Source: Zygnema circumcarinatum SAG 698-1b (taxonomy: Eukaryota; Plantae; Zygnematophyceae). Taken from it: a stretch of DNA of 64,000 bases. The stretch is taken from NCBI GenBank assembly GCA_037447605.1, contig CM074805.1, positions 1,459,361-1,523,360 on the forward strand, given 5' to 3'. Under the pieces are notes generated by a model. The model searched no databases. It was not told the DNA's origin and saw only the letters and a list, made by a program, of their open reading frames with translations. The translations under genes and the position numbers were made by a program. Positions 20,339-25,576 of the stretch are shown one piece after another; position 1 is the stretch's first letter; each line of letters starts with the position of its first letter.

Positions 20339-23300
20339 ATGCCGTCCATTTTAAGGTTCTTGACGGGGTTGAAGCTCCCAGAGCTTGAGCTGCCATGGGA
20401 CAGGAAAAAGCGGGAGGCACAAGCGGCAGGCGAGAAAGTTGGCCACGCTGCGGAGGCGAGCTTGGGTGAGAAAGCGCATGGAGATTTGGGCAAACATGTG
20501 AATTCAAAACCTGTTCGTAAGGGGATGTTTGCACGCAGGAAGAAAGGCCAACCGGTACTTCCTGCAAATGTTCTCTCTGGAGGCAACGTTCAGGACGGGT
20601 ATTCATTAGGGCTTGAATGTGACACTTTCAAGTTTGGCTCAGTGTTTCATGCAACAAGAAAATTGGACTCAGAACGGGTTCTTTGCAAGCGATATTCTAA
20701 GGAGGAGCTCCTTATTGTGGAGGACATGGAGACAGTCGCATCCGAGGTGGCAGCAATGCGCTGCCTGTCAGGTGAAAATGCTTCCTGCTTCATTGAGCCA
20801 ATGATTTTCCGCTGTTTCACAATCAGTGATTGTATTCTGGCGTACCTCTCGCATTACTGCGGTGACAAAACGGAAAACTTGGTGTGCCATCCTTCGGCTT
20901 GCCATACTTTTGTTATGGCAAGCACACATAGGGAATGCAAGTGACTATAGTGGTCATTCCCCATAACTCTATTAGAAATTGTGTGCGGCAATTGACTACA
21001 GTCCTATCTTGTGATGCCTTCTGTGTGCATTGGTAACTTGATTCTGAACAAACGGTCGTTATGTCACGTTAGAGCTACCTTTAGGCACTGCAAATTTGGG
21101 CGCTGCAATTCGCGTGCTCCTCTCGCATTCCAGACAGTTTAGTTACTTGGCTCAATCTTAGAATAGTCAGCTAGGTGTAGTATCCACAATGCGATTTGCA
21201 AATTTTCCACGATAGCACGACCAGTCCTGTTTAAGCCCCTGTGCTTCTCTCATACGCAGGGCAACCAAACATTGTGCAACTGCTTGACGTGTATGAGGAC
21301 AGCAAGTACATCCATCTCATCGTGGAAAGGTGTACTGGTGCCAAGCTTCTTGACTCGATCGGTAGCAAAAGAGATTACTCCGAGCAGCAAGTATCTAATG
21401 CCTTCCGGTCCCTTATGAGCATTATTAGCACATGCCACTCCCACGGAGTAATGTTGAGGTACTTGAGTGGCATCGATTCAACCCTGCCTGGCGGGTTGAA
21501 GGTTTCGCAAACATTGGCTGCCTTTTGTCATTCAGATGCTGCCTGGCGTGACTTCATGCATTACGAAAAAGGCTAAAAAAAATTCCTTGCTGGTGTCATC
21601 GAAGTGAGTGAGGAATTTCCAAAGAACCTAATTGTGGACGCAAACATTGGAGTAACGAGCCTGTGTTAAGGAGAATGTGCAGGAATGTGAAGATGGAAAG
21701 TTTCTGCTACAGCAACAAGAAAGTAGATGCTGTCTTGAAACTCGTAGACTTCACGGACTCTGTGATTTTCCAACCTGGTAAGTTATCTTGCGAAGGTAGT
21801 CCATGTTGCTTCCACTGTTGGTTGCACACAAACTTCATGTGGGAAATAAGAAAACTATGTATCCAGAATCTATTCACTCGTGCTGCAGAAATAGTTGAGA
21901 AAGTTGGTACATATTGCTGGGGAGCAGCAGATGAGGAATGCGTCCTCCCCCGTGGCATGTAAGAAGAAGGGCAGGATCTGCGGGTGCCTGGATTCCTGAG
22001 TTCCATATTCCAAATATTTCAGCCTGTTTACAATCTGAAACTAAACAGAAGAATCTATCGGTTTTTTTTAATCTATGCAACGGATGTTTTTGTGAAAGAA
22101 TGTATGGAATCACTTTGTTGGTGATCCATCTCAATTTCACTGATAGGCTGATATACTCCTGAAACCAATTTTGAAATGCTTATCCTGGTATATTGCTTTG
22201 CTATGCAGGCCAGAAGTTTAAGAATGTCATTGGTTCCCCCCTCTATATAGCCCCAGAGGTAAGATAGACGGCTGTGTGAGTGCTTTGATAACTGTGGTTT
22301 CTTTGGAGAGACAACATTTTCGTTTTTGTGAATACAAGAGATAATGAATTGCTGCTTCACGTAAAACATACAGCAAACTCAAAACGGACTGAGCTTCACG
22401 AAGCATCTTGAGTATTTTGGTTCACTATGTTGGGGCATGTTTGTGTTGAATTTGCAACACTGAAATCGTTGCAGTCGTAACGTGTTATTCGCTTGTTCGT
22501 ATGCAGGTACTCCTTTGCAGTTACGGTCCTGAAGCAGATGTATGGAGCTGTGGTGTCATACTCTACATTCTTCTGTGTGGCAACCCTCCATTTCCTGGCG
22601 GTGGGTTATTGACCGACAGCAGTCTGAGAGTCGTGCATTGCCTCAACAACGCTTCCTGGGCATACCTTGCGATGTATATCTCAGTGTAGCAGATGGATCA
22701 AGACCCAAAACTAAACTGTAATGTTGTTTTGCAGTAAGGTGAGTGAAAGGTCATGTTAACATTGACAAACAATGATGGTTGAGACGTAGGCATAGCAAGA
22801 GTGTGCTAGCGAGATGGGCAAGCTTTTCACAGCGGAATCTATTTGTAGAACAGGTGTTCGAATTCTGCGCGATTTTGGTGAAGGAGCACTGATTGTAGTG
22901 CTATGAATACTCTATTTGTCTCCTTAGTATGCCAATACTGAAACGCAGAGGCTGTTTTAGAAGGCGAAGCTTTTTTTATTAATGCACAGTAACTGCTTGT
23001 CCTTCTGTGCCGTACAGATAGAGACGCCGAAATCTTTGAGCGAGTACTCAAAGGGACTCTGGATGTTCGCTCCCCTCCTTGGCACAACATATCCAAAGAA
23101 GCGCGAGATTTGGTGCAGAAATTGCTCACAAGAGAGCCCCCCGCGAGAATTTCCGCAAAGCAAACACTGGGTATGTCCTGACGCTGGATAAAATAATTCA
23201 TCTAGAGTTCTTGTGATTGCTTACCACAATGCCGTGAGAAAATTCTGCTTCATGATGGTTTTTGAAAATCTTGCGTTACCTGCTTCATGTGAATCATTGA

Positions 23301-25576
23301 GGCTCGACAGCCTTGTTGTATCTGCCCAACACACTGAAATCAATTTTGCCAGGATGAGGTTATCTTGTTATAGCTTAGCGTGCCTCTCTGTATGAGCAAA
23401 CATGACGTATCAAGAAGAGCCCTGAAGAGGCGCATCAACTGACATGAAGATCCGTTATTAGTTATTATCTGTGACCTTCTGGTTGACCAAGCATCAATGC
23501 AATGTCCACAGCTTCCCTTATTTCACTAAGTGATCTGGGAATGTTGCACCTGCAAATTTTACCGTAAGTAAACCACATTCATTTGAAGCCTGCTGTTCGG
23601 CTGTCCTTCGAGATATACACGAAGCCCATTCGTAGTTTTTCACACTGGAAATTACTATGACACTGCTGCAGATCATCCATGGCTGAAGGATGGGGGAGTA
23701 AACAACGAGAAAGCATTTGACGCCTCTGTTCTCACCAATTTGACGAAGTTTTCTTTGGCAAGTAAAATGAAGAAGGTTGCTTGCCAGGTGAGTGGCTTGT
23801 TTGGCTGTGAATATATACCAAAATGACCTTGGCGATGGTTTGCGACTACAGAGATCCACTGAATTACGTAAACCATTGCTCTCCTGCTTGTGAGATTCTT
23901 AAAAGGGAGTGAATTTGTTTCTTTGGTCCGCTGGTAACCACATTTGAAGTCAACAAAGAAGGTATCACTTCATCCTCACTAGCCCAATGTTTCTCTCACT
24001 TTGTGCTTCCCGTCCCCCACACCCCCCCCCCTCCCGCCCGCCCCCCTTCCTGCTTGTTTCTTATTTTTGGTTATGGGTCGTATTGGGTGACAGGTCATGG
24101 CTCGGCATTTGCCCAAAAGTCAAATCGCAGAGCTAAAAAGTCTTTTCGAAGCGATAGATGTGAACAGGAGCGGAAATATCACGTACACGGAATTGAGAGC
24201 AGGACTACGCAAGGCTGGCGTAGTGCTTCCGGAATATGAATTAGAGGAATTGCTGGATGCGGTATGCTGTTTGAATCACCTTTTCCACGTGCACTTTTAT
24301 GTGTATTGTTTATGACAGTGACATGAATCAGAATGACATTTTCTGGAGAATTACTTACATATAAGGTCTATAGGAACTCTTCTCTACATGTTACCTGATT
24401 TTCTTAGCTACAGTTGAAATCTCACGATGATGTCCATTTCGAGCTGTCAAACTCTGTTCTTTCATCTTGAAAAGGGAGTCGACTAATCACTATCTTGGCG
24501 TGTTGCCGATTTTGGAAAAAGGATAGCTGTTCTGCGCCCATGGAAAGACCTGAGGCTTAAGGCCAGGTCATGAGGTCATCCTATGCATAGATGTGGAATA
24601 TTTCCACGAACCTGTTTTTCCTGCACTTTGCCTATATGATGATGTCCTCAAGGGAAACATGGTACTGACTGTGCATTGTAGATGAATTGCGATTGGTTCA
24701 TCTCCCGCAGATGGACTCGGATGGCAGTGGCTCGCTTGACTACCAAGAATTCCTAGCGGCAATGGCACACGTGCAACGGAGTTATAATCCTACGGATCTC
24801 GCCCGGGCTTTTCACCATTTTGATACTGATAGAGATGGGTATGTTGTTGCTTTCCCATCACTTACAGCCAACTACTGCGCAGTCTAATCATCAAAGAAGA
24901 ACTACCCGTGGCTGCTTAGATGACGTAGAGAGCTTTCTTTGACTTGCCAGGGAAACAAAGTCAGTCTTGAAATTAAAAAGCAGAGCGACTCTCAACCGAA
25001 CAGGAATCAATCGTTGAGGGGTTCTCCTTGCTCCCGAACTTTAGCACGTTCTTGCATTTGTTGTTGTTTTTGAAGGATCTGGTTGATGGAAGACTTCAAA
25101 GCTGGTAGGAAGGACTGGCGAGGGACAGAAAGTGAGAGACGGTGCTGAAGGGGAAACTGGGATATGCTTGTAGTCGAAAGCTGCATTCTGATTAGTCCCA
25201 CACACTGTTCTACAATTCCCAGGTTCATCACTGTGAGAGAACTGCGGAGAGCGTTGGAAGAGAACTATGACTTGGAGCCTCTGGAGATTGAAACTCTCAT
25301 TCAAATGGCCGACACCGACAAGGTATGGGACATTGAACTTAACTCGTCCCATCATGACTTTGTCATTTGCTGCATAAGTTACCAACATGATGTATTCAGT
25401 TGACCTTCTGACCGTATCTTGTGCATGGACGTTTTGCGGTATCATTGGGATTGAATAAAACATTTGGTTCGTTTTCTCTCGTCTACTCTCTGTAGTTTTC
25501 ATGCTCCCTCGTCTCACTTGTGCAGAATGGGCAGATCGACTTTGAAGAGTTTGTGGCAGCAATGAGCAGCGAATGA
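20339..25576 (+). CDS. CPK: CDPK-like protein with degenerate kinase domain (predicted pseudokinase) and 4 EF-hands; 11 exons
   Basis: Exons 20339-20771, 21260-21458, 21683-21777, 22209-22258, 22507-22600, 23018-23170, 23672-23787, 24094-24261, 24711-24838, 25223-25322, 25526-25576, all GT-AG with no stops. Kinase subdomains, junction domain and EF loops [48 protein letters not shown] are present. Confidence 0.93.

Follow-up and report, generated by a model that had tools for sequence, protein, structure and literature searches.

Calcium-dependent protein kinases (CDPKs) are the textbook fusion of a Ca2+ sensor with its effector enzyme. From them derive the CRKs of land plants, which pair an active kinase with degenerate EF-hands. 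In HER3, the Asp of the HRD motif is replaced by Asn (HRN), and the protein still binds ATP and serves as an allosteric partner of its active paralogue. This protein, HER3/ErbB3, is mentioned in PMC3019232, and CaMKv and CASK are animal pseudokinases of the CAMK group (PMC13727655). Here we consider a gene at positions 20339-25576 (plus strand) of a 64,000-nucleotide stretch of the Zygnema circumcarinatum SAG 698-1b genome (assembly GCA_037447605.1, contig CM074805.1, positions 1,459,361 to 1,523,360), hereafter the window. The gene, called PK for pseudokinase, has the architecture of a CDPK and is compared throughout with a neighbouring canonical CDPK gene (NB) and with a relative from another organism (P0001). 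We consider it roughly 70% probable that PK is a pseudokinase that is expressed, is maintained by selection, stems from a duplication of the CDPK lineage of NB, and acts as a Ca2+-switched binder.

Canonical plant-type CDPKs (CPKs), represented by NB and by the solved structure 9vhu (Calcium-dependent protein kinase 3), and PK have in common a variable N terminus, a CAMK-type fold, an autoinhibitory junction, and four EF-hands. PK nests inside the CDPK clade and has ten intron positions in common with NB; it differs from the canonical proteins in that the HRD Asp, the catalytic-loop Asn, the DFG Gly, two Gly-loop glycines, the VAIK Ala, and the beta7 Leu are replaced, and Gly2 is absent. CRKs and PK are alike in being derived from CDPKs with one of two functional modules degenerated, but they are mirror images, since PK has canonical EF-hands and a dismantled kinase centre and hence falls outside the CRKs. 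The first-pass annotation of the window, made from the sequence alone, had already called PK the opposite of the CRKs, and the canonical EF loops and degenerate catalytic centre that we find agree with this. CaMKv and CASK have CAMK-group folds with altered catalytic motifs, non-catalytic roles, and a link to Ca2+/calmodulin signalling, and PK would be similar on each count. However, they rely on separate calmodulin and have no fused EF-hand domain, whereas PK carries one. CASK moreover has an intact HRD Asp and needs no Mg2+ for its activity, whereas PK has lost this Asp, and in a quick tree CASK lies outside the CDPK clade, pointing to an origin independent of that of PK. With HER3, PK has in common the Asp-to-Asn exchange at the catalytic base and the retained beta3 Lys and DFG Asp; HER3, however, is a receptor tyrosine kinase, whereas in PK the adenine pocket and Gly-loop are altered as well and regulation would be by Ca2+. 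In the literature searched we found no published description of a CDPK-derived pseudokinase with intact EF-hands, a mention in the main pseudokinase survey being possible; searches for CDPK pseudokinases gave apicomplexan ROP, RLK, and other unrelated material.

The PK coding sequence, rebuilt from the window via canonical splice sites, comprises 1587 nt (528 amino acids) in 11 exons with ten GT-AG introns, a start ATG at 20339, and a TGA stop at 25574-25576. All 11 exons are open, as the first-pass annotation had stated. A search of sequencing runs showed that seven runs from three studies contain the stretch, and we compared the contigs of one run per study (X1, X2, and X3) with PK. The source runs bear no RNA label on record; we treat their contigs as cDNA because spliced contigs arise from cDNA only. 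In all three, spliced contigs skip all ten predicted introns with exact junctions, which settles the splice form for which RNA confirmation had been advised. Contig depth is roughly 50-700 in exon bins and 4-50 in introns, that is, about 10-20 times higher in exons. No base differences or indels between PK and these contigs were reported, so that the AAT (Asn) codon at 21684-21686, the HRD codon, is real. An assembly error at this codon, which GAC or GAT reads would have revealed, is ruled out, as spliced contigs from three studies give AAT only. A fourth run, X8, has no contigs for PK and carries no weight either way.

The features of the gene are as follows.

20245..20250, plus strand: TATAAA motif match, about 90 nt upstream of the PK ATG.
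20339..20771, plus strand: exon 1, with variable N-terminal residues 1-86, degenerate Gly-loop (20618-20638), L115-C-K117 (20681-20689), and alphaC Glu136 (20744-20746); joint 20771-21260 present in X1, X2, and X3.
21260..21458, plus strand: exon 2, with hinge G-A-K-L-L-D (21337-21354) and the start of the catalytic loop (Leu210, Arg211); Pfam Pkinase, E 1.9e-10; joint confirmed.
21683..21777, plus strand: exon 3, with Asn212 (21684-21686), Ser217, Cys219 (21705-21707), and D-F-T (21747-21755); joints 21458/21683 and 21777/22209 confirmed with no differing letters.
22209..22258, plus strand: exon 4, activation segment GSPLYIAPE, retained.
22507..22600, plus strand: exon 5, alphaF helix, retained.
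23018..23170, plus strand: exon 6, C-lobe, subdomains X-XI, with Arg334 retained; Pfam Pkinase, E 1.8e-5.
23672..23787, plus strand: exon 7, end of the kinase domain (HPW) and autoinhibitory junction from 23719, with Phe368 and K-M-K-K retained.
24094..24261, plus strand: exon 8, end of the junction and EF-hand 1 (24157-24192); EF-hand_6, E 2.9e-7.
24711..24838, plus strand: exon 9, EF-hand 2 (24714-24749) and first half of EF-hand 3 (24822-24838); EF-hand_1, E 9e-9.
25223..25322, plus strand: exon 10, second half of EF-hand 3 (25223-25241) and start of EF-hand 4 (25311-25322).
25526..25576, plus strand: exon 11, remainder of EF-hand 4 (25526-25549) and TGA stop.
25727..25732, plus strand: AATAAA in the PK 3' untranslated region, with RNA contig depth running to at least 25750.
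Junctions 1-5 in the RNA contigs, plus strand: 20771/21260, 21458/21683, 21777/22209, 22258/22507, 22600/23018.
Junctions 6-10 in the RNA contigs, plus strand: 23170/23672, 23787/24094, 24261/24711, 24838/25223, 25322/25526.

The 5' end of the PK transcript is probably near 20323, where the X2 contig starts with adapter letters before it. Upstream of the promoter, positions 20000-20110 hold short direct repeats made of GGCGAAAATATTGGGG-like units and TGTACTGTAC runs, followed by a CT-rich tract (CCCTCCCTCCCTCCC) and then the TATAAA at 20245. An alternative acceptor for exon 3 (AG at 21669-21670, exon from 21671) would add four in-frame residues, R-M-C-R. As foreseen in the first-pass annotation, these contain no Asp, and the RNA contigs use the acceptor at 21683 alone; the idea that alternative splicing restores the catalytic Asp is ruled out on both grounds. 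In intron 6 (23171-23671), a minor GT..AG joint from 23563 to 23672 occurs in X1 only, at a depth of 11.7 versus 80 for the main joint. The corresponding form keeps 393 nt of the intron (a partly retained intron) and would stop shortly past exon 6 (G-M-S-stop), losing the junction and the EF-hands. Within intron 7, a C-rich tract at 24014-24046 includes poly-C at 24022-24031, at which the contigs of X1, X2, and X3 break and show loose poly-C ends; this is probably a difficulty of assembly or sequencing and not biology. Over 49 nt at 22528-22576, contigs of all three runs match at 90-95% and then diverge into coding sequence for APEVLRRKYG... and ...GVPPFWAEN. Such contigs derive from transcripts of canonical CDPK paralogues, in which the alphaF region is likewise conserved, and do not represent variant forms of PK.

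By descent and architecture, as read from its sequence, PK is a member of the CDPK family, but its catalytic residues set it apart from the CDPK enzymes. Membership follows from PF00069 matches on exons 2 and 6, a full-length alignment with CDPKs, four fused C-terminal EF-hands, and the junction. The catalytic machinery (GxGxxG, VAIK, HRD Asp, catalytic-loop Asn, DFG), on the other hand, is incomplete. The Gly-loop reads C94-D-T-F-K-F-G100, the catalytic loop reads L210-R-N-V-K-M-E-S217 (LRN in place of HRD, with Asn212 encoded by AAT), the DFG equivalent is D233-F-T235, and the GGELFD equivalent is G171-A-K-L-L-D. All of these motif changes had been noticed in the first-pass annotation and were found again in the rebuilt protein. 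Two further changes in the adenine pocket, VAIK Ala to Leu115 and beta7 Leu to Cys219, had been overlooked. Lys117 (beta3, in LCK), Glu136 (alphaC), Asp233 (DFG Asp), GSPLYIAPE, and DVWSCG are canonical, again in line with the earlier reading. Pseudokinases are recognized in sequence by a missing beta3 Lys, HRD Asp, or DFG Asp; PK has Asn and P0001 has Ser in place of the HRD Asp. The filled adenine pocket of PK (Ala to Leu, together with the Gly-loop Phe) recalls, by analogy, engineered pocket-filling mutants. In studies of the kinase spines, such mutants fix the kinase in a closed, nucleotide-free scaffold state.

The Ca2+-sensing half of PK presents a different picture. All four EF loops fit the pattern D-x-[DNS]-x-[DNSG]-G-x-[ILV]-x-x-x-E, and all 17 invariant columns of the calmodulin (CaM)-like domain are kept; the first-pass annotation had noted that the four loops keep D1, G6, and E12. 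The protein begins with MPS, as does P0001, so the absence of a Gly2 for myristoylation also stands. The description of the junction as diverged, in contrast, was overstated. It does differ, being 49% identical to the junction of NB, but Phe368 and Leu386, both invariant in CDPKs, are still there, as is the K-M-K-K block, so it is not strongly diverged.

The first-pass annotation had proposed to look for CDPKs with a residue other than Asp at the HRD position; our searches for relatives of PK yielded a single such protein among the databases searched, namely P0001 from another organism, with Ser at this position. An exhaustive phmmer search with PK exon 1 against 1.84 billion representatives returned two proteins, P0001 and one unrelated fused CDPK. 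The latter, P0002 (739 amino acids), has repeated or duplicated CDPK N-lobes and a C-terminal part that looks broken; it is probably a mis-assembled or fused gene model from another organism. P0001 has 531 amino acids, aligns with PK from end to end at 46% identity, and is encoded at L001:141-1736 of a 2044-nt transcript contig from Logan run SRR8128905. This contig is full length and contains both untranslated regions, so the gene is expressed in that organism. Its catalytic centre reads S-K-F-K-F-G, L-R-S-L-K-L-E-S, and D-L-S, and all four of its EF loops are canonical. The N terminus, MPSVFSFLTGW, has MPS..FLTG in common with PK, and further common motifs are FKFGS, ERVLCK, YSEQQ, CHS..V.LR, L-R-x, K-x-E-S-F, AVLKLVD, RAFHHFD, and NYDLEPLEI. 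We regard P0001 as a putative ortholog of PK, the same kind of gene. Word-indexed searches with the whole of P0001, with residues 85-262, and with the fragment 85-350 gave no further orthologs or fragments, all matches being canonical CDPKs and CAMKs of no more than 42% identity. Scanning metagenomes with P0001 brought up 27 loci, of which the nearest are 40% identical; all 16 alignable catalytic loops among them keep the Asp (HRD or YRD). The other matches of the protein and metagenome searches were canonical HRD/DFG kinases (CDPKs and CAMKs) with at most 43% identity.

To see which CDPK features the two proteins keep, PK and P0001 were set against 29 canonical CDPKs, NB included, in which 74 alignment columns are at least 93% invariant. 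Both proteins keep 58 of the 74: 17/17 in the CaM-like domain, 2/2 in the junction, and 39/55 in the kinase lobe. Nine columns are altered in both, every one of them in ATP-binding or catalytic elements.

Gly95 and Gly97: Gly-loop.
Ala115: VAIK motif, lining the adenine pocket.
Gly172: hinge GG.
Asp212: HRD motif.
Pro215 and Asn217: catalytic loop.
Leu219: beta7, floor of the adenine pocket.
Gly235: DFG motif.

The HRD His is Leu in both proteins as well. Relative to canonical CDPKs, PK carries the substitutions G95D, G97F, A115L, H210L, D212N, P215M, N217S, L219C, and G235T; these positions are invariant in 29 of 29 canonical proteins except for the His (25 His, 4 Tyr) and the beta7 Leu (27 Leu, 2 Met). 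Four of the derived changes are identical in PK and P0001 (Gly97 to Phe, Ala115 to Leu, His210 to Leu, and Asn217 to Ser), and both have the derived motif L-P-K-x-Q after the junction, where canonical CDPKs have L-S-E-E-E. The catalytic-base position, by comparison, is Asn in PK and Ser in P0001, and the beta7 Leu is replaced by Cys and Arg, respectively.

These data bear on the possibility that PK is a low-activity or atypical kinase that binds ATP via Lys117, Glu136, and Asp233 and performs slow or Mg2+-independent transfer, with Ca2+ gating a weak output or autophosphorylation. Such an enzyme could draw on the residues kept in both proteins, which include Lys117, Glu136, Arg211, the catalytic-loop Lys214, Asp233, APE, the alphaF Asp270, Trp272, Arg334, and HPW. 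There are also reported precedents in HER3 and in CASK, the latter a CAMK-group "pseudokinase" that turned out to be active (PMC13727655). However, nine otherwise invariant ATP-binding or catalytic residues, two Gly-loop glycines among them, are altered in both species, and both adenine-pocket residues are changed. The Asn/Ser difference at the base position, moreover, argues against a conserved alternative chemistry. We therefore consider an atypical kinase unlikely. From the pattern of substitutions, we infer that PK has lost catalysis, and it has probably lost nucleotide binding too.

NB, on the opposite strand, is the canonical counterpart from whose lineage PK would have arisen.

31909..36043, minus strand: NB, canonical CDPK, 517 amino acids, 11 exons, with GKGQFG, HRDLKPEN, DFG(T), and four EF-hands.

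The two genes stand tail-to-tail, 6 kb apart, with a basic helix-loop-helix (bHLH) gene in between. Exons 3-10 have equal lengths in NB and PK (95, 50, 94, 153, 116, 168, 128, and 100 nt), and ten of ten intron positions are homologous, the first two matching in codon and phase. In a careful maximum-likelihood tree, PK and P0001 group with support of 100/100 (100 in a quick tree), and PK, P0001, and NB lie together inside the plant-type CDPKs with support of 98/98 (99 in the quick tree) and the topology (NB,(PK,P0001)). Since the two proteins form a clade with common losses, the duplication and the dismantling of the catalytic centre are older than the split of the two organisms. The stem of the pseudokinase clade has a length of 1.0 in the careful tree and 0.87 in the quick tree; the tips of PK and P0001 measure 0.77 and 0.82 in the former and 0.68 and 0.76 in the latter, against 0.29 for NB in both. 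PK has thus evolved at about 2.5-3 times the rate of NB, and by these branch lengths its lineage with P0001 is the faster-evolving one ever since the duplication. A long-branch artefact as the cause of the PK and P0001 pairing was considered and rejected, given the many common derived motifs, the common N terminus, and the support of 100/100.

Selection was assessed from Nei-Gojobori counts on the codon alignment of PK with the P0001 coding sequence (L001:141-1736), a single pair. As the proportion of differing synonymous sites (pS) is generally at least 0.75, these sites are saturated, dS is infinite, and a pairwise ratio of nonsynonymous to synonymous rates (dN/dS) is not calculable; pS is therefore set against the proportion of differing nonsynonymous sites (pN).

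N terminus, residues 1-86: pS 0.76, pN 0.56, identity 24%.
Kinase domain, residues 87-346: pS 0.76, pN 0.33, identity 50%.
Junction with linker, residues 347-387: pS 0.61, pN 0.41, identity 34%.
CaM-like domain, residues 388-528: pS 0.88, pN 0.28, identity 55%.

Under neutrality, pN approaches pS. The counts indicate that the kinase lobe and the EF-hand domain of PK are clearly constrained and the N terminus much less so, as expected from purifying selection and not from decay. The per-domain test suggested in the first-pass annotation thus gave no sign of neutral decay, with pN at 0.33 (kinase) and 0.28 (CaM-like) against pS of at least 0.76. A transcribed, decaying duplicate of NB would fit the active paralogue adjoining PK and the long branch of PK. 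Yet the 528-codon frame is open, the splice sites of all ten introns are used, a full-length open ortholog exists despite saturated synonymous sites, and the EF loops are canonical in 8 of 8 cases across the two proteins. With pN well below saturated pS and two open frames of 528-531 codons, a decaying pseudogene is excluded for practical purposes, and we rate it as very improbable. The view of PK as a pseudokinase with a function, as opposed to a pseudogene, has, in this way, gained support from the RNA-confirmed AAT codon and splicing, from P0001 and the 100/100 clade, and from a pN far below pS.

The same counts speak to a second alternative, in which PK is essentially a tethered calmodulin-like Ca2+ sensor: the EF-hand domain alone works, and the kinase lobe is carried along as inert structure. 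In keeping with this, conservation is highest in the CaM-like domain (55% identity, pN 0.28, and 17/17 invariant columns). The kinase lobe, however, is constrained too (pN 0.33 versus 0.56 for the N terminus). It keeps 39/55 invariant columns, among them those that define the fold, namely APE, the Asp and Trp of alphaF, Arg334, and HPW. Clade-specific motifs of the kinase lobe (FKFGS, ERVLCK, and AVLKLVD) are conserved as well. A passenger role for the lobe consequently appears quite unlikely.

For the fold, P0001 served as proxy for PK. An AlphaFold2 model of P0001 built from a 28-sequence alignment has a mean predicted local distance difference test score (pLDDT) of 77.7, with values of about 90 in the kinase domain and 60-88 in the CaM-like domain; residues 1-73 are disordered. 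In this model P0001 keeps the kinase fold, and Foldseek matches it to full-length CDPK structures. The fit is better to Ca2+-free CDPK forms, with a template modelling (TM) score of 0.53 and a root-mean-square deviation (rmsd) of about 13 A, than to Ca2+-bound forms, with a TM score of 0.46 and an rmsd of about 24 A. Among solved structures, the closest in sequence is that of a CDPK3, with E 2.5e-114.

Two observations on the surroundings of PK may be added. NB has Thr at the DFG+1 position (DFGT), its modelled start (MDGG) has no Gly2, with an upstream in-frame ATG at 36094, and its last intron contains an assembly gap (N run, 32100-32109) flanked on the minus strand by poly-C runs on either side. 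The gene between PK and NB is the following.

about 26757-29539, minus strand: bHLH gene, whose C-terminal part looks LRL-like.

As to how PK might work, the retention of kinase fold, peptide-binding activation segment, autoinhibitory junction, and four canonical EF-hands suggests the following scenario. A duplicate of the CDPK lineage of NB would have lost the residues for ATP-Mg binding and phosphate transfer before the organisms of PK and P0001 split. These residues lie in the Gly-loop (two glycines), VAIK (Ala), HRD (His and Asp), the catalytic loop (Pro and Asn), beta7 (Leu), and DFG (Gly). What is left would most likely operate as a CDPK-like intramolecular switch, in which Ca2+ fills the EF-hands and the CaM-like domain draws the junction off the dead kinase lobe. 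The freed lobe would then bind partners without phosphorylating them, and its role would be that of a scaffold, a substrate trap, a competitor, or an allosteric regulator. A CDPK-type switch with a binding output is proposed because EF-hands, junction, and peptide-binding activation segment are retained together, and the post-junction motif L-P-K-x-Q that PK has in common with P0001 lends it support. That PK binds Ca2+, switches conformation, and engages partners is what we infer from these retained elements, and a Ca2+-switched non-catalytic role for PK is plausible.

Several points weigh against PK as a maintained, catalytically dead Ca2+ switch. PK retains the beta3 Lys, alphaC Glu, and DFG Asp, which makes some nucleotide binding or trace activity possible. 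Only one ortholog was found and synonymous sites are saturated, so that selection is argued from pN against pS instead of from a codon model. The three RNA studies may share the assembled strain and thus provide no population evidence. Furthermore, Glu173 of GGELFD, which forms the P-3 site, is Lys in PK, whereas P0001 keeps the Glu. The partner-binding surface of PK may therefore differ from that of a CDPK, and this counts against a simple mimicry of NB with respect to its substrates.

A more far-reaching proposal, which we put forward tentatively, is that PK and P0001 represent a lineage-specific family of Ca2+-gated pseudokinases that decode Ca2+ non-catalytically, for instance by sequestering substrates of the sister CDPK NB or by modulating it allosterically, in either case depending on Ca2+. 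If true, CDPK signalling would have an inbuilt dominant-negative or scaffolding branch, and the family would be, in function, the mirror image of the CRKs. With its sensor under selection and its enzyme apparently off, PK suggests that the Ca2+-driven conformational change of a CDPK can be used for binding alone rather than for phosphorylation, and it may offer a natural tool to part the scaffolding from the catalytic roles of CDPKs. To the pseudokinases it would add a CDPK-derived member. If the host alga belongs to the sister group of land plants, PK may also have a bearing on how Ca2+ decoding diversified before the colonization of land.

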